A stretch of DNA of 64,000 bases, from contig NW_027361737.1 in NCBI RefSeq assembly GCF_039654945.1, positions 25,420,001 to 25,484,000 on the forward strand, given 5' to 3'. This DNA comes from Dendrobates tinctorius (Eukaryota). This document shows positions 1-49,123 of this stretch, piece after piece. The notes under the pieces were generated by a model. That model did not search any database, was not told where the DNA came from, and was given only the letters and a program-made list of their open reading frames with translations. The translations under genes were made by a program, and so were the position numbers. The first letter of the stretch is position 1, and every line of letters starts with the position of its first letter.

Positions 1-775
1 AAAATTAACATATTTGGCATCACTGTGAGTATAACGGTCTGAATACATAGGCTGCTATAATATTTGACACACAGTGAATGCCAAAACAAAGTAATCCAAA
101 TGTCAGGACAGGCTCCATTTCCACAATACGCACAGGTTTCCTGACAAGGTAGTTTTAGGCGCAGTACGGTAACTTTTTTTTTTTCCTTGGTCAGATTTTT
201 AAGTGTTTTTTTTTTTTTTTTTGTGGTATATGGATCTTAATTTTTCTGTTATTTTCATACCTTTATTTTTTTTTGTATCTGGTGATACAGGTGGGAAAAT
301 AAAGGAAATGTCACCAAAAAAACATTTTAAAATTGGCTTCCCTTCCTGTAAAAGTTATTTTAAGTATTGTCACTTCTTTCTTCCAGGGTAAGGGCTAGAA
401 ACATCGATTTTTCAATTCTTTTTTTTTTTTTTTTATACACACTGTGCCCATCATAAAGTCATTAAAAAAACCTTTGTGGTGGGTGGCATTTCAACACTTC
501 AAAAATACCTTTTTTTTTTTTTTTTAGAATCTTATTTCCCCTTTAATTAAGGCTGGTATAGTAGCCCCAGTTACAGTGGAAATGAAGCCTCCTGCCTCCA
601 TAGCAGATCTGTCTGATTGAGAAGGCAGAGTCCGTAATAAACCATCTCTGTCGTCTTCGACAGTCTGAACAAACTATTTCCTTCTCCTCCGATACACAAT
701 CACATGCAGCTGCTCTACAATGCAGGGATATTTTAGAACGTCCGCACACAGCAGAATGCAGATTTCGTAGGCATT

Positions 776-12549: not shown

Positions 12550-14733
12550 GTATGTGTGTAGTTTTAATAGGAGTGAGGGGATCATGCATACCAGGATTGG
12601 GGGATGACAGGACCATGCATACCAGGTGTCATGATCCATGCTGGATCATGACAGATGAAATGCACTAGTAACCTTTTTTTTTTCCTTAAAGCTGTGGTGC
12701 TTAGATAGTTTTGCCCCCCGGTGGCCTTTAGGGTCATTGCACTGTGGTGGTTTCAGTTCTAGTTTTGCCCCTGGTGGCCGTTAGGGTCATTGCACTCTGG
12801 TTTCTTTAGTTTAGTGCATGTGATTATAAAGCAGGTGTGATTGCTCTGGCTCTGCTATAAAAGAGTGTCAGGTGTTGCAATCACTGTTGGTGATACTGGT
12901 CATTTCCAACCATCCTTGGTGGAGGAAGGAGCTAGAGAGAGTTCCTTGCAGCACAGAGTCCTGGTGTGGAAGGAGTCACAGGGGATTTCCTTGCAGCTCT
13001 GACAGAGCTTGGTTGCAGCTATTCAGGAGGAAAGCTGCATTCTGGTGGTGGAATCTGTTGCTGGGAGCAATAGCAACAGAGCAAAGCTAAGTAGTGTTTC
13101 CCTGTTTGTATTTTTCCCTGGTGTGTATTAGTACAGCGGTGGGGCCAGTGCCTGCACCACCAAGCTCCCTAGCAAGGGATAGGTGTAGGGTGTGCTAGGG
13201 TCACAGGTTCCGGCTCGGCGACAGGTGAGGAACCTGTATAGGGAACGTTAGGAGTGTTAGGGACTCTGACTCAGGGGAGTGCAGGAGGTCTCCACGTCCC
13301 CGTTCCTATCGCAGGGGCCACCGTTGTAACTGTTTCCCCTTCCCCCTTGTCTTGTTGTTTTAGTTACCGGCCTGCAGGTCGTGTCCCACAGGACCGGTCC
13401 ACGTGACACCAGGATTGGGGGATGAGGGGTACCATGCATACCGGGATGGGGGGGTGAGAGGACCATGCATACCAGGATTGGGGGATGAGGGGTACCATGC
13501 ATACCAGGATTGGGGGATGAGGGGTACCATGCATACCAGGATAGGGGGTCATACATACCATGATAGGGATGAGGGAGTGCCATGCATACCAGGATTGGGG
13601 GATGAGGGGTACCATGCATACCAGGATAGGGGATGAGGGGTACCATCCATACCAGGATAGGGGGTGAGGGGACCATGCATACCAGGATAGGGATGAGGGC
13701 GTACCATGCATACCAGGATTGGGGGATGAGGGGTACCATGCATACCAGGATAGGGGGTCATACATACCAGGATAGGGATGAGGGAGTACCATGCATACCA
13801 GGATTGGGGGCTGAGGGATACCATGCATACCAGGATAGTGGGTGAGGGGACCATGCATACCAGGATAGGGGGGGGGGTGAGAGAACCATGCATACCAGGA
13901 TTAGGGGATGAGGGGCACCATGCATACCAGGATTAGGGGATGAGGGGTACCATGCATACCAGGATTAGGGGATGAGGGGTACCATGCATACCAGGATAGG
14001 GGGTGAGGGGACCATGCATACCAGGATAGGGATGAGGGCGTACCATGCATACCAGGATTGGGGGATGAAGGGTACCATGCATACCAGGATTGGGGGATGA
14101 GGGGTACCATGCATACCAGGATGAGGGGTACCATGCATACCAGGATGAGGGGTACCATGCATACCAGGATGAGGGGTACCATGCATACCAGGATGAGGGG
14201 TACCATGCATACCAGGATGAGGGGTACCATGCATACCAGGATGAGGGGTACCATGCATACCAGGATGAGGGGTACCATGCATACCAGGATGAGGGGTACC
14301 ATGCATACCAGGATGAGGGGTACCATGCATACCAGGATAGGGGGTGAGGGGTACCATGCATACCAGGATAGGGGGTGAGGGGTACCATGCATACCAGGAT
14401 AGGGGGTGAGGGGACCATGCATACCAGGATAGGGGGTGAGGGGACCATGCATACCAGGATAGGGGGTGAGGGGACCATGCATACCAGGATGGGGATGAGG
14501 GAGTACCATGCATGCCAGGATTGAGGAGTGATGGGACCATGCATACCAGGATGAAGAATGGGGTGCCGTGCATACCAGGATTGGGGGGGGGAGTGAGGGT
14601 ACCATGCATACCAGGATAGGAAAGAGGGGTGCCATGCGTATCAGGATAGGAGGGTGGCAGCACATACCAGGATGGGAGACCATATACCAATTAAAATGCT
14701 CGCCACCCGGGCGTAGAACGGGTTCATAGCTAG
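12550..14733 (+). mobile_element. Helitron-like non-autonomous element made mostly of a variable-unit minisatellite
   Basis: Units with core ACCATGCATACCAGGAT (21-31 bp) run 12570-12626 and 13409-14680. The 3' end has hairpin CCCG..CGGG then CTAG|T at 14730-14734. The 5' end is not sharply defined. Confidence 0.6.
12627..13408. mobile_element. Solo LTR (782 bp, probably Gypsy type)
   Basis: TGTCATG...CGTGACA termini with 5-bp TSD CCAGG (12622-12626, 13409-13413); interrupts the minisatellite. Confidence 0.85.
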
Positions 14734-20680: not shown

Positions 20681-22712
20681 TAACTTTAGATAGATTTTTT
20701 GTCCAAGAATAAATGTGGATTGTTGTTCATGGGGGGGAAAAAAGACATCCCCTGAAAATAAGCCCTAATTCATTTTTCGGAGCAAAAAATAATAAAAGGC
20801 CCTGTCTTATATTCAGAGAAACACAATATACTTTTATTGCTCAGAATACAGTATGCAATAACAATGTAAAGTAATAAAATAATAAAATGTAGACACACCG
20901 TGGTACTGATATATAAATTTGATGCATCGATCAAAAAGTAATTTTGAGCCTGTATTGTGAGACTGTTGTTCTGTTCTGACTCCACAGCATCCATTACCTC
21001 CTTGTAAATGTTTGTTTTTTCAATAATTTTTTGAAATTCTTAGAAATAATAATCTGATGGGGCCAAATCAAGACAATATGGCTATAGGTCGCCAATTTCA
21101 AAGCTGGTTTCATTGAGATGTTGCAGGACAATGAGACTTGTGAACGAGCGCATTATAATGCAAAAACAAGACTTTTGTTTAACCCCTTTACCCCCGAGGG
21201 TCGTTTGCACGTTAATGACCGGGCCAATTTTTGCAATTCTGACCACTGTCACTTTATGAAGTTATAACTCTGGAACGCTTCAACGGATCCTGTGGATTCT
21301 GAGACTGTTTTTCGTGACATATTGTACTTCTTGATAGTGGCAAAATTTCTTCGGTATGACTTGCGTTTATTTGTGAAAAACACGGAAATCTGACGAAAAT
21401 TTGGAAAATTTAGCAATTTTCCAAATCATCTAGTAGTGCAGTGATCCTATTGACACATGTGCCTCTAGAGTTTTATACCACTGAGCGGTGAAGAAAGAAT
21501 AAATTAGCCTTAGTGGTAAAAATGTATGTGCCCACGTATGTTGAAAATTCCTGACTAAAAACCGGACTCCTTCCAAGGAAAAACGCTTTTTTTTTATTTG
21601 CGCGCATTTTTTTTACGCGTTTTTTTCCGGAGCATCCACATTCTCATAGAATATAGTTGGAAATGCATTTTTTTTCCACAAAACTAATGAACATGCTGCA
21701 TTTTTTTCCCGCAATGCGTTTTTTTTCCGCAAAAAAAATGCATCATGTGCACAAAAATTGCAGAATGCATTATAAGAATGGGATGCTTAATGTATGCGTT
21801 TCTAGGCGTTTTTGCATGGAAAAAACGCAAAAAAAGCTTACGTGGGCATACAGCCTTAAATTTAGTTTTAGCTCCAGATTTAACATTTTCACATAAGTGG
21901 GTAAAAATGTCACCAAAATTTGTGGAACAATTTCTACTGAATATGGCAATACCCCATATGTGACTGTACAGTACTGCTTAGCCATACGGAGAGACTCGAG
22001 AGGGACGGAGCGCTATTTGCCTCCTGGAGTGCAGATTTTCCTAGAACAGTTTGCAGACTCCATATACAGAGCCCCTAATTGCTAGAAGAGCAGAATCCCC
22101 TTTCAAGTGACCCCATTTAGGAAACTATACCCCTTGGGGAATTTATCTACAGGTGTAGTGACAATTTTGACTCCATGGGTATTTTCCAGAAACAAGCAGC
22201 AATGAATGTTGCCGAGTGAAAATTGGAAGCTCTCGCTGTAGCCGCCAGTGTGCTATGCTCAGCCTGTGCTTCTGGAGGCATACACCCATAAGTTAAGCGA
22301 GCTGTCATCGCTTCAGAAATGTCGTTCCGCGTGTGGTAAAATTGATAAGGCAGTTTTATTTTTCGGGTCAGTATGATTACAGCGATATCACATTTATAAC
22401 GTTTTTTATGTTTTGGCGCTTTTATACAATTAAAACTATTTTATAGAAAAAATAATTTTTGCATTGCTTTATTCTGAGAGCTATTACTTTTTTATTTTTC
22501 CGTTGATGGATCTGTATGGCGGCTTGTTTTTTTTGCGGGACAAAATGACGTTTCAGCTGTACTATGTTTATTTATATTGATCTTTTTGAATGCTTTTTAT
22601 TCCACCTTTTGTTCGGTGGTATGATGATAAAGCGTTGTTTTTTTTGCCTTGTTTTTTATTTATTTTTTTATGGTGTTCACTAAAGGTGTTATCTAGTTGG
22701 CACCCTACAACT

Positions 22713-23428
22713 TGCCAAAGATCTGTCCCCACCATCCTACACTGTGCCAAAGATCTGTCCCCACCACCCTACATCGTGCCAAAGATCTGTCCCCACCACC
22801 CTACATCGTGCCAAAGATCTGTCCCCACCACCCTACATCGTGCCAAAGATCTGTCCCCACCACCCTACATCGTGCCAAAGATCTGTCCCCACCACCCTAC
22901 ATCGTGCCAAAGATCTGTCCCCACCACCCTACATCGTGCCAAAGATCTGTCCCCACCACCCTACATCGTGCCAAAGATCTGTCCCCACCACCCTACATCG
23001 TGCCAAAGATCTGTCCCCACCACCCTACATCGTGCCAAAGATCTGTCCCCACCACCCTACATCGTGCCAAAGATCTGTCCCCACCACCCTACATCGTGCC
23101 AAAGATCTGTCCCCACCACCCTACATCGTGCCAAAGATCTGTCCCCACCACCCTACATCGTGCCAAAGATCTGTCCCCACCACCCTACATCGTGCCAAAG
23201 ATCTGTCCCCACCACCCTACATCGTGCCAAAGATCTGTCCCCACCACCCTACACCGTGCCAAAGATCTGTCCCCACCACCCTACACCGTGCCAAAGATCT
23301 GTCCCCACCACCCTACACCGTGCCAAAGATCTGTCCCCACCACCCTACACCGTGCCAAAGATCTGTCCCCACCACCCTACACCGTGCCAAAGATCTGTCC
23401 CCACCACCCTACACCGTGCCAAAGATCT
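22713..23428. repeat. 32-bp minisatellite, ~22 copies
   Basis: Unit TGCCAAAGATCTGTCCCCACCACCCTACA(T/C)CG. Confidence 0.95.
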
Positions 23429-26049: not shown

Positions 26050-29049
26050 TTAACCCCTTCATGACCTGGCCATTTTTGGCAATATTGACCAGTGTCCCTT
26101 TATGAGGTAATAACTCAGGAACGCTTCAACGGATCCTAGCGATTCTGAGACTGTTTTTTCGTGACATATTTGGCTTCATGTTAGTGGTAAACTTAGGTCA
26201 ATAATGTTTGCATTTATTTGTGAAAAAAACGGAAATTTGGCAAAAATTTTGAAAATTTCACAATTTTCACATTTTGAATTTTTAATCCGTTAAACCAGAG
26301 AGTTATGTCACACAAAATAGTTAATAAATAACATTTCCCACATGTCTACTTTACATCAGCACAATTTTGGAAACAAATTTTTTTTTTTGTTGGGAAGTTA
26401 TAAGGGTTAAAAGTTGACCAGCGATTTCTCATTTTTACAACAAAATTTACAAAACCATTTTTTTTAGGGACCACCTCACATTTGAAGTCACTTTGAGGGA
26501 TCTATATGGCAGAAAATACCCAAAACTGACACCATTCTAAAAACTGCACCCCTCAAGCTACTCAAAACTACATTCAAGAAGATTATTAACCCTTCAGGTG
26601 CTTCACAGCAACTAAAGCAATGTGGAAGGAAAAAATGAACATTTTAATTTTTCCAATAAAAATTTTCTTTTAGCATCAATTTTTTCATTTTTCACATGGG
26701 CAACAGGATAAAATGGATCCTAAACTTTGTTGGGCAATTTCTCCTGAGTACACCGATACCTCATATGTGGTCATAAATCACTGTTTGGGCGCACGGCAGG
26801 GCTCAGAAGGGAAGGAGCGCCATTTGACTTTTTGAATGGAAAATATGCTGGAATTTTTAGCGGTTGCCATGTCGCGTTTGGACAGCTCCTGTGTGCCTAA
26901 ACATTGGATCTCCCCCACAAGTGACCCCATTTTAGAAACTAGACCCTCCAAGGAACTTATTTAGATGCATAGTGAGCACTTTGAACCGCCAGGTGCTTCA
27001 CAAATTGGTCCGTTAAAAAAAAAAAAGGACTTTTTTTTCACACAAATTTTCTTTTAGCCTCAGTTTTTTCATTTTCACATGGGCAATGGGATAAAGTGGA
27101 TCCTAAAATTTGTTGGGCAATTTCTCCTGAGTGCACAGATACCTCATATGTGGTCATAAACCACTGTTTGGGCACACGGCAGGGTCCCGAAGGGAAGGAG
27201 CACCATTTGACTTTTTGAATGGAAAATTAGCTCCAATCGTTAGTGGACACCATGTCGTGTTTGGAGAGGCCCTGTCTGCCTACACTTTGGAGCTCCCCCA
27301 CATATCACCCCATTTTGGAAACTAGACCCCCTAAGGAAGTTATCTAGATGCACCCGCTATCCTTTATTTTCACAGTAGTAACTGGAGAAATTTGACCCCA
27401 AAAGTTATTGTCCAGTTTGTCCTGAGTACGCTGGTACACAATATGTGGGGAGGGACCACTGTTTGGGCACACGTCGGGGCTCGGAAGGGAAGTAGCGACG
27501 TTTTGAAATACCGACTTGATGGAATGGTCTGCGGGAGTCATGTTACGTTTGCAGAGCCCCTGATGTGGAAACAGTGGAAACCCCCCACAAGTGACCCCAT
27601 TTTGGAAACGAGACCCCCCAAGGAACTTATCTAGATGTTTGATGAGCACTTTGAACCCCCAAGTGCTTCACCCAAGTTTATAACTCAGAGCCGTGAAAAC
27701 AAAAAAAATCATTTTTTTCACAAAAATCATTTTTTTAGCCCCCAAGTTTTTATTTTCCCAAGGGTAACAGGAGAAATTAGACTCCCAAAGTTGTTGTGCA
27801 ATTTTTCCTGAGTACGCTGATACCCCATATATGGGGGTAAACCACTGTTTGGGCACACGTAGGGGCTCGGAATGCAGAGAGTGCTGTTTGACATTTTGAA
27901 CGCAAAATTGGCTGGAATAAATCGTGGCGCCATGTCGCGTTCGGAGACCCCGTGATGTGCCTAAACAGTGGAAACCCCTCAATTCTAACTCCAACTCTAA
28001 CCCCAACACAACCCTAACGCCAACACACCCCTAACCCTAATCCCAACTCTAACCCTAACTACAAGCCTAACCCTAACCCTAATTCCAGCCCTAACCCTAA
28101 TTCCAGCCCTAACCCTAATTCCAGCCCTAACCCTAATTCCAGCCCTAACCCTAATTCCAGCCCTAACCCTAATTCCAGCCCTAACCCTAATTCCAGCCCT
28201 AACCCTAATTCCAGCCCTAGCCCCAATTCCAGCCCTAGCCCCAATTCCAGCCCTAGCCCCAATTCCAGCCCTAGCCCCAATTCCAGCCCTAGCCCCAATT
28301 CCAGCCCAATTTTTTTTATTTTATTATTTGCGCCTGGCTATGGGGGTGATAAAAGGGGGGTGTATTTACTTTTTTTTTCATTTTGATCACTGTGAGAGTG
28401 TATCACAGTGATCAAAATGAAAAATGAACGGGCAACCGGCAAATTCATGGGCGCCGCCATCTTGGACAATGGCAGGCGCACTGCGCATGCGCCCGCCATT
28501 TTGCAAGATGGCGGCGCCCATGATTCGGACGCCGGGAGCCACGGCGGGACACCGGGAGCACGATCGGAGGTCCCGGGGGATCGGAAGGTGGGAGGGAGCG
28601 ATAGGAAGGGGAGGGGGAGCAGATGATGACGGCGGCGACCGATCGCCGCCGTCCATCGGTGGCGGGGGCCGATCGGTCCCGCCAGTTGGTGTGTGGGGGG
28701 GTCGGGTGTTGGTGTCCAGCCATGTCCGATGCTATTGCAGCATCGGCCATGGCTGGATTGTAATATTTCACCAAATTTCATTGGTGAAATATTACAAATC
28801 GCTCTGATTGGCTGTTTCACTTTTAACAGCCAATCAGAGCGATCGTAGGCACGTGGGGGCTAAGCCACGCCCCCTGGGATTAACTGTAGAGTGTCCTCTG
28901 TGTGCGGGTCGGGTGACCTTTCAATGACCCCGGTCACCCGACCCGCAGGGGGGCTATTTATAGCATGACGCCTAAGTAGGCGTCATAGGTCGTTTGGGCA
29001 CGACTTTTCATGACGCCTACGTAGGCGTCATGGGTCGTGAAGGGGTTAA
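26050..29049. mobile_element. Non-autonomous TTAA-target DNA transposon (3 kb)
   Basis: TTAACCCCTTCATGACC ... GGTCGTGAAGGGGTTAA; internal degenerate tandem blocks and a telomere-like array. Confidence 0.8.
27985..28308. repeat. Telomere-like 18-bp repeat (CCCTAACCCTAATTCCAG)n inside the transposon
   Basis: Direct reading; the unit changes to CCCTAGCCCCAATTCCAG in the last copies. Confidence 0.9.
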
Positions 29050-29439
29050 AGAAGCACTCCCATTCACATTTTTTCCCCATTAATTCTGTGTATATGTGCA
29101 CATATTGTAGTGTATTGATCTACTCACCTACCGCCCCCTCCTCCAGTATTCAGTGCCGTCCTGATCCTCTTATCAGTGATGTGACCTCTCATCAGACTAA
29201 CTGACTCACTCTATGCGTGAGCCGGAAGTCTCTCTTACAATGTAAGCCTATGGAGGCTCCTTCTGTCATTCTGTAGGCTTGCGTTGTACAAGCCACTTGC
29301 CTGTCACGCAGAGCGCAGTGTGACCCGAAAAGTCTGCAGAGAGATGACGTCATTAAGATGAGCAGAATGGTGCTGTGTCCCGGAGAGAGACTTGGTATTT
29401 GAGCATATTAATACACTCATACTACACAACATATACAGT

Positions 29440-30825
29440 GAAAACCAAAAACAAAGCACAAAACAAATATCCTGGAATAAAAAAGTAAAAAAATATATTG
29501 CAAAAATTGCATGAAGGTAGTAATAATAAGGGTATTTAGTTAACATAATTTTGATCAAAATAATGTAGAAGCCATCCCGCCACGTCACGGCAACCCTTGT
29601 GGGACAGTCCTAACTCTTGTATTTAAAACCTTTCCACTTGTCAAGTGACGTAAATGTGAACAAGGACAGAGGGACTGAACCACCAGTAATAGTATAGGCC
29701 AGACAGGATGGATTTTCCAACTCAGAAACAGGGCGGTCACACCCTTATATGCACAGAATGCACAATGAAACAAATGAGAAACTGGGTCTGAGCAGAAAAA
29801 GTAAATTAATGTGCATGCAAAATGTAATTGCATATGAACACATGACCTTTACACAGAGAAAACCAAAAACAAAGCACAAAACAAATATCCTGGAATAAAA
29901 AAGTAAAAAAATATATTGCAAAAATTGCATGAAGGTAGTAATAATAAGGGTATTTAGTTAACATAATTTTGATCAAAATAATGTAGAAGCCATCCCGCCA
30001 CGTCACGGCAACCCTTGTGGGACAGTCCTAACTCTTGTATTTAAAACCTTTCCACTTGTCAAGTGACGTAAATGTGAACAAGGACAGAGGGACTGAACCA
30101 CCAGTAATAGTATAGGCCAGACAGGATGGATTTTCCAACTCAGAAACAGGGCGGTCACACCCTTATATGCACAGAATGCACAATGAAACAAATGAGAAAC
30201 TGGGTCTGAGCAGAAAAAGTAAATTAATGTGCATGCGAAATGTAATTGCATATGAACACATGACCTTTACACAGAGAAAACCAAAAACAAAGCACAAAAC
30301 AAATATCCTGGAATAAAAAAGTAAAAAAATATATTGCAAAAATTGCATGAAGGTAGTAATAATAAGGGTATTTAGTTAACATAATTTTGATCAAAATAAT
30401 GTAGAAGCCATCCCGCCACGTCACGGCAACCCTTGTGGGACAGTCCTAACTCTTGTATTTAAAACCTTTCCACTTGTCAAGTGACGTAAATGTGAACAAG
30501 GACAGAGGGACTGAACCACCAGTAATAGTATAGGCCAGACAGGATGGATTTTCCAACTCAGAAACAGGGCGGTCACACCCTTATATGCACAGAATGCACA
30601 ATGAAACAAATGAGAAACTGGGTCTGAGCAGAAAAAGTAAATTAATGTGCATGCAAAATGTAATTGCATATGAACACATGACCTTTACACAGAGAAAACC
30701 AAAAACAAAGCACAAAACAAATATCCTGGAATAAAAAAGTAAAAAAATATATTGCAAAAATTGCATGAAGGTAGTAATAATAAGGGTATTTAGTTAACAT
30801 AATTTTGATCAAAATAATGTAGAAG
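29440..30825 (-). mobile_element. 3.3 x 418-bp tandem non-coding insertion with a 14-bp TSD (retrozyme-like)
   Basis: Period 418 (repeated ORFs at 29585/30003/30421). ACAACATATACAGT at 29426-29439 and 30826-30839. It interrupts a MITE whose uninterrupted relative is at ~48567-48969. Confidence 0.85.
29528..29607 (-). ncRNA. Candidate HDV/CPEB3-like ribozyme fold (also at 29946-30025 and 30364-30443)
   Basis: Hand fold: P1 CUGUCCC/GGGAUGG, P2 AAGGGU/ACCCUU, P3 GCC/GGC, L3 GUGACGU, P4 ACAUUAUUUU-GAUC-AAAAUUAUGU, J4/2 CUAA. The +1 C and the first G of L3 are non-canonical. Confidence 0.55.
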
Positions 30826-32487
30826 ACAACATATACAGTATATATACTATTAATGTAAAAAAGCCTGTTCATGGTAACATGAACCTCAGTACTTGGGAGC
30901 AGCCACTTCACAGAGCACAGTGATGGCGTCCTGGCTCAATACATTGCTGATGGTGATGGTGCATGCTGTTGAACCCTTATTTTCTGATATTGATTACCCA
31001 AGTCCTGCACAACCTCTTCAATATTCACTAGTTGGATTGTACTGCTATAGAGTTCATCTGATCACTGGGGGTCCTGACAAGGGGGCACTTTCTGATACTT
31101 TTATTGCTATCGTGCTTTCTAGCAAGGGATTGTCGAAAGTGGGGATATTTTGTGAATGCACATTGCCCATATGTTGCATTTGTGAATATATACAGCATCT
31201 TTATAAGATATATCTGTGTGCACCATGTCTTGACGTCTGTGCGCAGGACAGATGCTCGTACAAATTGGCCCCTGATAACTTACCTGTGGGACAAAATGTT
31301 TTTGGATTTTTAGTTGGTGACCGTAGCATTGATGATGGATGCACCACCAGCTGGCCACATTGGCCCTACTCTTCTGATAATAAAGGGACTTTTCAGTGCT
31401 GTAATTGGCTGAGGCATCTGATATCATAAACGTTGATCGATGTATTCAGGATTTCTATTACATTTCCTTGACATCTCCAGCATTGCTGAAGGGCAGTTTA
31501 CTTCATGGCACACTGCTTTCATTCTTCTCTACAGTTTATTTAGTGCCTTAACTGCATCCACTTTTCATAAAGAAAATGTGTGATGTCTTGTTTTTCTGAA
31601 GATGAATATAATATTACTTTTATCTCTACAATCAGGGAGATCGATCCATTACAACCGTGCAATATCTAAATGTGTAAAAGTGGATGAGCGTGATTACATT
31701 ATAGCCTGACCAGTCACGACGCATGGACATCAGCCTATGTCTGCAGAAGACGCAGCATAATAGTAGTTGGCTGGGCTGTTTCCTGAAACTCGCAGTATGT
31801 GGTGATTGAGAAAAAAAAAATCACAAAGCCTTTCTAAGGCCAAGTTCTCACGGGGCAATTTTGCTGCAGAAAGTTGCTTTAAGGGAGTTTTCAAAGTTCA
31901 GAATAAAAAATGTGACCAATGCGGGAGAGTGAAGGTGGGGGAAGGAGTTCTTTATTACAGAACAAGAAAAAACAAGTAATGCTGGACATTTCATGACGTG
32001 CCACCAATATGTGGGACCCTGCCCTCAACATCTCTGTTAATTAGTGCATTAATCAGTATTTGTAGATAAATCAGACAGTTATATACAGGTTTTTTAAACT
32101 GGACATCATCATCTACTTTGATGTTTTGTACAAGGCTTCTTTTTGGCTGGGAGCTCACCATCAAGAACAGGATGAGCTTTTCCGATTGTTCATATTCATG
32201 TCAAATTTAGCACATTTAGAAATTAATACTCCATTGTCTCATAACCCCCTGCTTTACGCCAAAGTAATAATTCTGTTGTGGGGCACATTTTATTAATCTT
32301 TGTGCCAGATTTTAGGGCTTTTGTTTTCTTCTTTAAATGTTGAATTTTTTTTACTCTAAATCTCCCTCAGTAGGTAAAAATAAGTATCTCTAGGCATACA
32401 TAAAGACAATGTTATCATACCCTCCTCTCACTGCAACTTTATCCTTGAAAGTACCGCATGTGAGACACTTCCCCTAGTGAATGAGCC

Positions 32488-39469: not shown

Positions 39470-39675
39470 GCTTGCTTGGTTATATGGCCACGTCGGTCAC
39501 CAGGCCTGCTTGTTTATATGGCCACGTCGGTCACCAGGCCTGCTTGGTTAAATGGCCACGTCGGTCACCAGGCCTGCTTGGTTAAATGGCCACGTCAGTC
39601 ACCAGGCCTGCTTGGTTATATGGCCACGTCGGTCACCAGGCCTGCTTGGTTATATGGCCATGTCGGTCACCAGAC
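39470..39675. repeat. 34-bp minisatellite, ~6 copies
   Basis: Unit GCTTGGTTATATGGCCACGTCGGTCACCAGGCCT. Confidence 0.9.
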
Positions 39676-39974
39676 CTTACCCAGATGGACTTTTTCTTTT
39701 TGGTAGTTATCAAATTTAGGAATATTAATGGAAACCATGCACAGTTGATAACATAATTATAATTTGGCAATTCTTTTAACTATAGATCTATTTCTGCCCC
39801 CCCCCCGCAATATGTTGACACTATAGATAAGAGGAAATAATGATTTTTCCTAGGTCTGCTCTTACTACAGAGCACTGCGGACCCCCTGCTTTGCCAGGAT
39901 ACGTCAGTATGTGCACAGCTCGCCGACCACATCCCAGTCCTCGGATGACCAGGCTGACACTGTCACATACTCAC

Positions 39975-47779: not shown

Positions 47780-49123
47780 GTGAGCACTGTATACAAATAT
47801 ATAAGCAACAAGTGACTGATCAATACTTTCCATAGGTGTCTGATCTGTCAGCGGTGGGTGTTCTGCAATAATGTGCCAATCAGTTTTTAATGTAGGGGTC
47901 CATGTTACATAAGGACATAATGGAGCAATAAGCAAACTGCTGTTTAGTGCTGACCATGAGATCTGGGTTTCATCAGACCATATGCACACTGCTGTTGGTG
48001 CAGTTTTTTGTGTATTTGTATTACAAGAGCTTCCTTAAGGGCATCTGGATATCTTTGTGGCTTGTTGCTCAGGTCATATTTTTTTTTACTGTCCTGCTGC
48101 CAGTTATAATGCAGTCTGTTCTGACATTCTGTAAAATATTCCAAATACCTTGATTCATCCATTCGTAATTACCATTAGAGGGGTTGTCTCATCTTAATAA
48201 ATGCATAAAGTCCTGGTAAGAACAAGCAGCTCTTGTTTGAGATCCTCTGTTTCTCCAAAACAGAGATTTTTCATTCTATAGTTTACAGTGTGTGGCCTAG
48301 GTTACCGTCCACTTCTGCAGTCTATCAGAGGTGGTTGGTTTCCTAAGCAAGGAGTGCTTCTTGCATGCTCTCTGCTTTAGAGCTTACATGTGCTGCTCTT
48401 ACATCCTCTGATGATACAGAACCAGAGCTGCCTCTACTAACAGCATGATCGTTTGTAATCATTGGAGCAGTGATTCCTCTGGACCAAACTGTCAATCTAT
48501 AGGAGCTCAGTATCCCCCAGGAAGAGGAGTGGCGTGTTCATGAATAAAGATTAAAGAGCCTCATTATTAAAGCACTCCCATTGATATTTTTCAGTTTAGT
48601 GTGAGTGTATTAATATACTTACCTACTGCTACTCTCCCCAGGATCCAGCGTCGTTCTGCTCCTCTTCTCAGTGGCATCACCTCTCTTCAAACTCTCTGGT
48701 TCACATTGTGCTCTGCATGACCCAGAAATGGCTTTTACAATGTAAGTTTATGTGGTGTCAGAACGAGCCTCCATTGGCTTAGAGTGTAAAAGAGACTTCT
48801 GATTTGCCCATCGAGTGAGCCACCTAGTCTGATAAGCAGTGACCTCCCAAGAAGAGGAGCAGAATGGCGCAGGACAATGGAGAGAGTGGAGGTAGGTGAA
48901 TATATTACCGTAATACAATCACACTGCACACATTTTAATGTAAAAAAAAATATGGGAGAGCTTGTTTAACCTTGAAATGCTTCTTACTACATTTTCATTA
49001 CGACGGCCCCTGTCCTGTCTCCTTCTATTGGACGAAGTAGAGTCACAGCAAATTCTGGCTTTTAGCCCGGCAGACTCTGCCCATCCATTTATTACATATA
49101 TTTAGATGGATGGTATCTAATAA

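Follow-up and report, generated by a model that had tools for sequence, protein, structure and literature searches.

The metazoan retrozymes without long terminal repeats (non-LTR retrozymes) are low-GC tandem units of about 170-400 nt, with target-site duplications (TSDs) of more than 4 bp (PMC7229834). They form circular RNA via ribozyme cutting and RtcB ligation, and are probably mobilized by Penelope-like elements (PMC7229834; bioRxiv 10.64898/2026.07.22.740005). A second group of self-cleaving RNAs, which comprises the ribozymes of hepatitis delta virus (HDV) and the CPEB3 ribozyme (RF00622), has the element order P1-J1/2-P2-P3-L3-P3'-P1'-J1/4-P4-J4/2-P2'. Here we analyzed a 64,000-nt stretch of DNA from the frog Dendrobates tinctorius (NCBI RefSeq assembly GCF_039654945.1, contig NW_027361737.1, positions 25,420,001 to 25,484,000 of the forward strand), hereafter the window, in which an 80-nt segment of a tandemly repeated 418-bp unit shows the same element order. 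On balance, comparison with phage sequences favors the reading that this segment is a natural HDV-like sub-class with a doubly inverted core, carried once per unit of a non-coding frog retroelement. As read from the letters, the inversion turns the G1.U wobble into C1-G36 and the C22-G pair of P1.1 into G22-C37, two pairs predicted to be stacked beside the scissile phosphate.

The array contains three full copies and one truncated copy of the fold, as follows.

29440..30825, minus strand: inserted multimer of the 418-bp non-coding unit (Tandem Repeats Finder: period 418, 3.3 copies, 99% identity)
29528..29607, minus strand: HDV-like fold, copy 1, with the predicted cut between 29608 (A-1) and 29607 (C+1)
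29946..30025, minus strand: HDV-like fold, copy 2, same sequence as copy 1, the reference for contig placement
30364..30443, minus strand: HDV-like fold, copy 3, same sequence as copy 1, from sequence reading and descriptor match
30782..30825, minus strand: truncated fold at the 5' end of the insert, positions 37-80 only (J1/4, P4, J4/2 and P2')

Fold positions count the proposed +1 base as 1, so that a window coordinate is converted by subtracting it from 29608; the layout is as follows.

29601..29607, minus strand: 5' strand of P1, CUGUCCC, positions 1-7, partner 29572-29578 (GGGAUGG)
positions 8-9, minus strand: J1/2, AC
29592-29598, minus strand: P2, AAGGGUU, positions 10-16, partner P2' at 29528..29535
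positions 17-19, minus strand: P3, GCC, partner P3' GGC at positions 27-29
29582..29588, minus strand: L3, GUGACGU, positions 20-26, with G20 at 29588 and G25 at 29583
29572-29578, minus strand: P1', GGGAUGG, positions 30-36
29570..29571, minus strand: J1/4, CU, positions 37-38, C37 pairing with G22 and U38 opposite U21
29540..29569, minus strand: P4, an AU-rich palindromic hairpin with a GAUC loop, positions 39-68
29536..29539, minus strand: J4/2, CUAA, positions 69-72, with C69 (29539) as the candidate general-acid cytosine
29528..29535, minus strand: P2', AUACCCUU, positions 73-80, with U74 bulged, pairing with P2 at 29592-29598

Direct reading of the minus strand from 29607 to 29528 thus yields the 80-nt fold with its elements ordered as in HDV. 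An earlier sequence-only reading of this DNA had proposed exactly this parse, and the agreement is letter for letter; it had also placed the fold in every full 418-bp unit, and the three full units indeed agree in all 80 nt. Perfect matches to the 36-nt 5' half are confined, within the window, to 29572-29607, 29990-30025 and 30408-30443. The copy at 30782..30825 cannot cleave, because only J1/4, P4, J4/2 and P2' are present. P1 and P2 are 7 bp long, the latter with one bulge, and P3 has 3 bp. The P1 pairs run C1-G36, U.G, G.U, U-A and then three C-G pairs; on the plus strand two of the seven are lost, in keeping with the earlier claim that the G.U pairs of P1 work on one strand only. P1.1 consists of one Watson-Crick pair, G22-C37, plus U21.U38, the inverted polarity that had been noticed from the letters. 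In J4/2 the first base is a cytosine, the equivalent of C75, followed by UAA (29539-29536).

The swapped core was compared with phage sequences by scanning IMG/VR phage contigs with five patterns. All five share one backbone (P3 GCC/GGC, L3 UU[G/C]NCGU and U38) and vary solely at position 22, the last P1' base and position 37. The counts, which for three of the five patterns are samples among the matches listed, were as follows.

G22 with G36 C37 (both swapped, frog-like): 92 unique matches, 42 with a 7-bp P1
C22 with U36 G37 (canonical, CPEB3-like): 72 unique matches, 25 with a 7-bp P1
C22 with G36 C37 (mixed): 60 unique matches, 3 with a 7-bp P1
G22 with G36 G37 (mixed): 94 unique matches, 1 with a 7-bp P1
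G22 with U36 C37 (mixed): 91 unique matches, 1 with a 7-bp P1

Among the matches listed, a 7-bp P1 was completed by 46% of those with the swapped core versus 2% of the mixed controls (5/245). With CNAA and a P2 of at least 5 bp without gaps required in addition to P1, 14 swapped and 7 canonical matches remained among those listed, compared to one with the mixed core C22/G36C37 and none with the other mixed cores. It follows from this comparison, in which matched combinations are frequent and mismatched ones stay at background, that P1.1 covaries between C-G and G-C. Among the matches listed, the inverted P1.1 accompanies only C1-G36 and the canonical P1.1 only G1.U36. As the phage C-G pair goes with the inverted P1.1, the C1-G36 pair of the frog fold represents a class-level difference and not a decay mutation. 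The fraction of matches that complete the fold, set against the controls, is the real test here, because 100% pairing inside the selected set arises by construction.

The swapped phage set comprises 28 distinct P1 and 29 distinct P2 sequences, with three to five pair types at each P1 position from 2 to 7. Its P4 is either about 5 nt long or a proper hairpin, of unrelated sequence among members (L103, L082, L119 and L073). In the 37 swapped phage parses, made with no constraint on J4/2, this element starts with C in 33 and reads CUAA or CCAA in 29, and the base at -1 is A in 26; the frog fold also has A at -1 and CUAA. The phage locus L025 and its relatives even share the bulge at the second P2' base. 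Overall, the frog fold agrees with the swapped phage class at every defined position but 20, including A-1, C1-G36, an A-rich J1/2, GCC/GGC, xUGACGU, CU, a P4 abutting CUAA and a bulged P2'. The option of a variant class, which the sequence-only reading had raised, is thereby borne out in that the atypical core recurs in dozens of distinct phage sequences.

All pair statistics were taken from structure-aware parses. An alignment of the frog fold and 24 phage motifs by MAFFT was dropped for pair counts, with P1 and P2' out of register because J1/2, P2 and P4 vary in length. In Rfam, the canonical phage relatives on the same backbone were scored as CPEB3_ribozyme at 33.5 bits (E 1.6e-5), just under the cut-off, whereas phage examples of the swapped core gave no match, as for the frog copies. 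The swapped class can thus be described as a CPEB3-like fold with a double inversion. For the frog array, Rfam 15 reported on both strands no HDV, CPEB3, hammerhead or other ribozyme, either at the gathering score or at E<=10, so the earlier expectation that standard descriptors would probably miss the fold was correct. A metagenome scan with the 19-nt conserved core returned 10 matches, all of them chance hits in bacterial contigs and none belonging to the frog family.

One phage match stands apart. The minus-strand motif of L145, about 91 nt from the end of the locus, is the sole mixed-core match with a complete fold, carrying C22, a U at +1 that faces G36, and CGAA as J4/2. Rather than being a true exception, it is possibly a canonical ribozyme in a shifted register.

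The frog family was followed in four sequencing runs, used as assembled contigs and placed on one unit (copy 2) at 80% likeness. The family is hugely abundant: a single species A DNA run contributed 2132 placed contigs, and the unit could be assembled even from runs as small as 8-50 million letters. A second species, B, has the family too, and the repeat was assembled as contigs in runs X9, X17 and X20, for which an RNA nature is a guess. At the fold's 3' edge the summed contig depth climbs steeply; its maximum is on the fold, and it drops beyond the 5' edge. In 32 contigs the likeness is lost within the final one or two bases of P2' (29947, a single base short of the 3' end). Within the fold, the contigs carry the following variants.

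A11>G in P2, which yields G.U with U79
C9>U in J1/2, at an unpaired site
G20>U in L3, whose share is 3% for species A and 40-66% for species B
minor P4 changes, at positions 46 and 47
C40>G together with A67>U at the P4 base, linked majority alleles that turn C.A into G.U (29986 G>C and 29959 T>A in copy-2 coordinates)

No variant of at least 5% was seen in the contigs in P1, P3, L3 positions 21-26, P3', P1', J1/4 or J4/2. About one variant falls in the 47 helix and core positions, versus about 5.6 expected from the rest of the unit (p about 0.02). This deficit lends modest support to a constrained RNA structure, but does not amount to clean covariation. On covariation among homologues, by which the sequence-only reading had proposed to check the fold, the outcome is divided: the phage helices covary strongly, in a set chosen for pairing, whereas the frog family offers only compatible single changes and the one P4 exchange of C.A for G.U.

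The host element looks like a young insertion of a retrozyme-like element that would use an HDV-type ribozyme. The insert is bounded by two TSD copies.

30826..30839, minus strand: upstream TSD copy, 14 bp, ACTGTATATGTTGT by direct reading
29426..29439, minus strand: downstream TSD copy, 14 bp, a perfect direct repeat of the upstream copy

From unit position 37 the insert runs through two full turns to position 168. It ends in an arbitrary phase and lacks a poly(A) tract. Six of the first eight bases of the downstream TSD equal the would-be continuation of the unit, a microhomology at the 3' junction, and blastn of the unit extends to unit position 176 with two mismatches. The multimer has a GC content of 36.8% and its longest open reading frame encodes 94 aa. 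The full units differ at one base in 418, compared to a divergence of 1-20% in the family, as would be expected of rolling-circle reverse transcription of a template that we assume to be one circular or multimeric RNA. Neither pattern search nor blastn found further copies of the family in the window beyond the array. The locus is therefore best regarded as one ordinary young copy among thousands, and its value lies in being a clean intact example, with three identical folds, clear ends and a TSD.

Several observations weigh against a functional ribozyme at this locus. A generic HDV descriptor was run on the window, both strands included (a 7-bp P1 allowing up to two G.U pairs, a 0-5-nt J1/2, a 6-8-bp P2 that may contain a bulge, a P3 with three Watson-Crick pairs, a 7-8-nt L3, a 2-3-nt J1/4, a P4 region of 8-90 nt and J4/2 as CNAA, leaving +1, L3 and P1.1 unconstrained). 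It matched the three full copies and nothing else, but it also finds 0.18 loci per dinucleotide-shuffled window, with at least one match in 19 of 120 shuffles. Because the three identical copies amount to a single independent event, the parse falls short of significance when taken alone (p about 0.16), and support for the fold comes from comparative data outside the window. Nested minimum-free-energy folding of the 96-nt region was no better than that of shuffles (z +0.73), a value that is uninformative because the fold is a pseudoknot, and circular folding of the unit was not markedly rod-like (z -1.36 for the minus and -0.23 for the plus strand). Moreover, the +1 base is a C paired with G36, and the G1.U wobble that closes P1 is absent; position 20 is a G, and the U20.G25 reverse wobble, a metal-ion site, is absent as well, with G25 kept. 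Both deviations had been pointed out in the sequence-only reading, and the G1.U wobble and U20 count as hallmarks of HDV-like ribozymes. The P4 of the present copy contains two U.U mismatches and, at the base of the hairpin, the C40.A67 mismatch. The insert begins at position 37, inside the fold and away from the predicted cut, and the frog family has compatible changes without a clean double compensatory change in P1-P3. Finally, since the phage patterns were taken from the frog core, the identity of P3, L3 and J1/4 between frog and phage arises by construction. A second HDV-like ribozyme on the plus strand, as in HDV, was also considered and rejected, with neither a descriptor nor an Rfam match there.

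The alternative that survives best, possible although unlikely in our estimate, is that the frog segment is a relic: a descendant of the swapped-core class that lost catalysis through U20G and the C40.A67 mismatch, and that spreads without self-cleavage, for example by read-through multimeric transcripts copied by a borrowed reverse transcriptase. Position 20 speaks for it. The equivalent of U20 is invariant in 508/508 natural HDV sequences, and the G23/G28 mutant of the antigenomic ribozyme cleaves with a k2 of 0.0037 versus 1.74 per min, 470-fold slower (PMC3386971). In the phage class U is strongly preferred as well: at least 42 members have it, against four with G and one with C. The P4 base points in the same direction, as the majority of the family has G40.U67 and the present copy C.A, and so does the start of the insert away from the predicted cut. 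By contrast, among replacements of the U alone in antigenomic HDV, only G keeps activity, and G23/G28 is among the four mutant combinations of that pair that retain activity (PMC3386971). In the phages, too, G is the commonest alternative: a scan for non-U bases at position 20 recovered 5 true members among 70 unique phage matches, one with C and four with G (L552, L556, L585 and L618), all four carrying the exact frog core GCC-GUGACGU-GGC. Furthermore, the G20 form makes up about 97% of the species A contig depth at position 20, among contigs at least 80% alike to the unit, and it produced at least this young insertion with one base in 418 differing between units. Its dominance in species A and the very young insert make G20 compatible with recent large-scale amplification. 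The remaining core is unchanged in the family, which would be unexpected after loss of function.

Compared to this relic, a recurrent variant with reduced activity accounts for these data more readily. The ribozyme predicted for the G20 subfamily is probably slow rather than fast, and slow is favored over dead because the HDV equivalent of G20 keeps residual activity. Of the three outcomes named in the sequence-only reading, the variant class is thus upheld as a recurrent class, the slow ribozyme is favored and the dead one is disfavored by the residual activity of the HDV mutant. G25, which the frog fold retains, is essential (PMC13635239). A weak P1.1 of one Watson-Crick pair plus U:U is compatible with fast cleavage, and active ribozymes with a P1.1 of U:A plus U:U or C:U are known (PMC13635239). 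The dominance of G20 together with the young insert means either that a slow ribozyme suffices for spread, or that spread needs no cleavage.

The weakest alternative, improbable in our view, is that the 80 nt are conserved for another role (a binding or priming site of reverse transcriptase, an internal promoter or a TGACGT-type factor site) and that the HDV-like parse is a coincidence aided by the reader's free choice: the chance rate of the generic parse, the blank Rfam search, nested folding without a structure signal, the TGACGTGG motif in the core with its inverted partner ACGTCAC at unit position 375, and the silence of conservation on what is conserved would all allow it, but the frog-derived pattern retrieves dozens of unrelated phage sequences that complete the double pseudoknot, in which P1, P2 and P4 covary and the J4/2 cytosine is conserved, control patterns one core base off fail, the frog segment equals the phage class at all defined positions but 20, and the family variants inside the fold are compatible with the structure.

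Taking the HDV-like sub-class as the preferred reading, we propose a cycle for the frog element. Tandem copies would be transcribed on the minus strand, and each fold would cut 5' of C1, between 29608 and 29607, with C69 (29539) acting as the general acid and a Mg2+ ion held near G25. The monomers might then be circularized by a host RtcB-type ligase, as shown for hammerhead retrozymes. The reverse transcriptase of an autonomous element, possibly Penelope-like or a long interspersed nuclear element (LINE), could copy the circle or multimer repeatedly from a nicked target, which would leave a multimeric insert that starts in any phase, is flanked by a target-site duplication and lacks poly(A). 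The wider proposal is one to which we give somewhat less than an even chance: an active sub-class without the G1.U wobble otherwise regarded as universal, reaching from phages to vertebrates and functional only if both pairs are inverted, would drive a very abundant frog HDV-type "retrozyme" that makes 418-nt circular RNAs without a hammerhead. The literature covered, with subscription journals outside coverage, contains no description of the swapped core, of an HDV-type retrozyme or of frog HDV-like elements. The swapped-core sub-class is apparently undescribed, and is probably a real ribozyme variant that has been overlooked.

If this proposal is true, the natural C-G pair at the cut site, tolerated only with an inverted P1.1, would offer a ready-made test of models, and current descriptors and covariance models would systematically overlook part of the HDV-like family. 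It would also mean that a second ribozyme class joins the retrozyme lifestyle in vertebrates, and would indicate a very abundant frog source of small circular RNAs.

The unit holds further sequences that could pair with the fold. The 7-mers CCAUCCU and CUGUCCU could replace the P1 strand opposite P1', and ACGUCAC is the perfect complement of L3. They lie at unit positions 315-321, 357-363 and 375-381 (e.g. 29705-29711, 29663-29669 and 29645-29651), 40-105 nt upstream of the next fold in each full unit. These 7-mers could block cleavage in multimeric or circular RNA, or be there by chance.

In the surroundings of the array, the DNA downstream of the insert (29190-29427) is 72.5% alike over 240 bp to 48594-48833, 19 kb away, which places the insertion site in or beside another dispersed repeat. 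A degenerate telomere-like interstitial array of CCCTAA variants is located at 27980-28307, about 1.1 kb from the insert. Three minisatellites are also found in the window, at 13408-14650 (G-rich units of 24-31 bp, about 41 copies), 22701-23428 (32-bp unit x22.8, 98% identity) and 39473-39677 (34-bp unit x6).

In the phages, HDV-like ribozymes adjoin giant structured RNAs (L442:27-510, L013:2380-3134, L074:2620-3342, L106:9324-10063, L070:6183-6905, L044:4193-5902 and L526:3504-4758). The canonical motif of L442 begins 4-5 nt past a sub-threshold GOLLD match (72.6 bits, cut-off 150), as if this putative ribozyme trimmed the 3' end of GOLLD. L013, L074, L106 and L070 have the swapped-core motif about 300 nt upstream of GOLLD and L044 has it about 1.2 kb downstream, and the canonical motif of L526 lies about 600 nt upstream of a ROOL RNA. 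A report of GOLLD together with HDV was not found in the literature, subscription journals being outside coverage. In addition, the ribozyme-associated motif RAGATH-5 scores above the Rfam cut-off at L021:2617-2669, in the same phage locus as a swapped-core motif.

Compared to the CPEB3 and HDV ribozymes, the frog fold likewise has a 7-bp P1, a 3-bp GC-rich P3 and G25, and its P1.1 resembles that of CPEB3 in combining one Watson-Crick pair with U.U. The P3 of genomic HDV is also GCC/GGC, and the J4/2 of antigenomic HDV is also CUAA with C in first place. However, the G1.U wobble, C22-G37 and U20 of CPEB3 and HDV are replaced by C1-G36, G22-C37 and G20 in the frog fold, and its P4 differs in being AU-rich with mismatches. 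The frog L3, which ends in ACGU, presumably differs from that of CPEB3 at positions 20 and 22, and its U20 form at 22 only.

The minimal HDV-like ribozymes of the drz-Mtgn-1 type and the theta ribozymes are phage-borne double pseudoknots like the swapped phage motifs, which are built alike, with a P4 of often only a few bases and an essential cytosine in J4/2 (PMC10879173). Many of the swapped motifs come from large gut-phage contigs, the same kind as the hosts of theta. Theta ribozymes have G1 at the cleavage site and lie beside tRNA 3' ends (PMC10879173). The supplements of that paper (PMC10879173) contain neither the swapped string UUGACGUGGC nor the canonical string UUCACGUGGC on the present backbone, a look-up that does not discriminate because the canonical string is absent too. 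The frog fold differs from both types in its full-length P4 and its eukaryotic retroelement host.

LINEs such as R2, RTE and L1Tc bear HDV-like ribozymes at their 5' ends. Like the frog fold, these are retroelement-borne and would define where the RNA of the element begins. They are single-copy, have a canonical core and sit at the 5' end of a protein-coding element, whereas the frog fold is present in every unit of a non-coding tandem element whose insert does not start at the cut.

Among known systems, the metazoan retrozymes share with the frog element the tandem non-coding units, the low GC, one ribozyme fold per unit, the TSD and the multimeric inserts, attributed in retrozymes to rolling-circle reverse transcription, as well as a very high copy number in amphibians. 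The frog unit of 418 bp is slightly above their published size range. Compared to the type I hammerhead carried by the metazoan retrozymes, the frog unit has no hammerhead (Rfam, both strands, E<=10) and carries the predicted HDV-type fold in its place.

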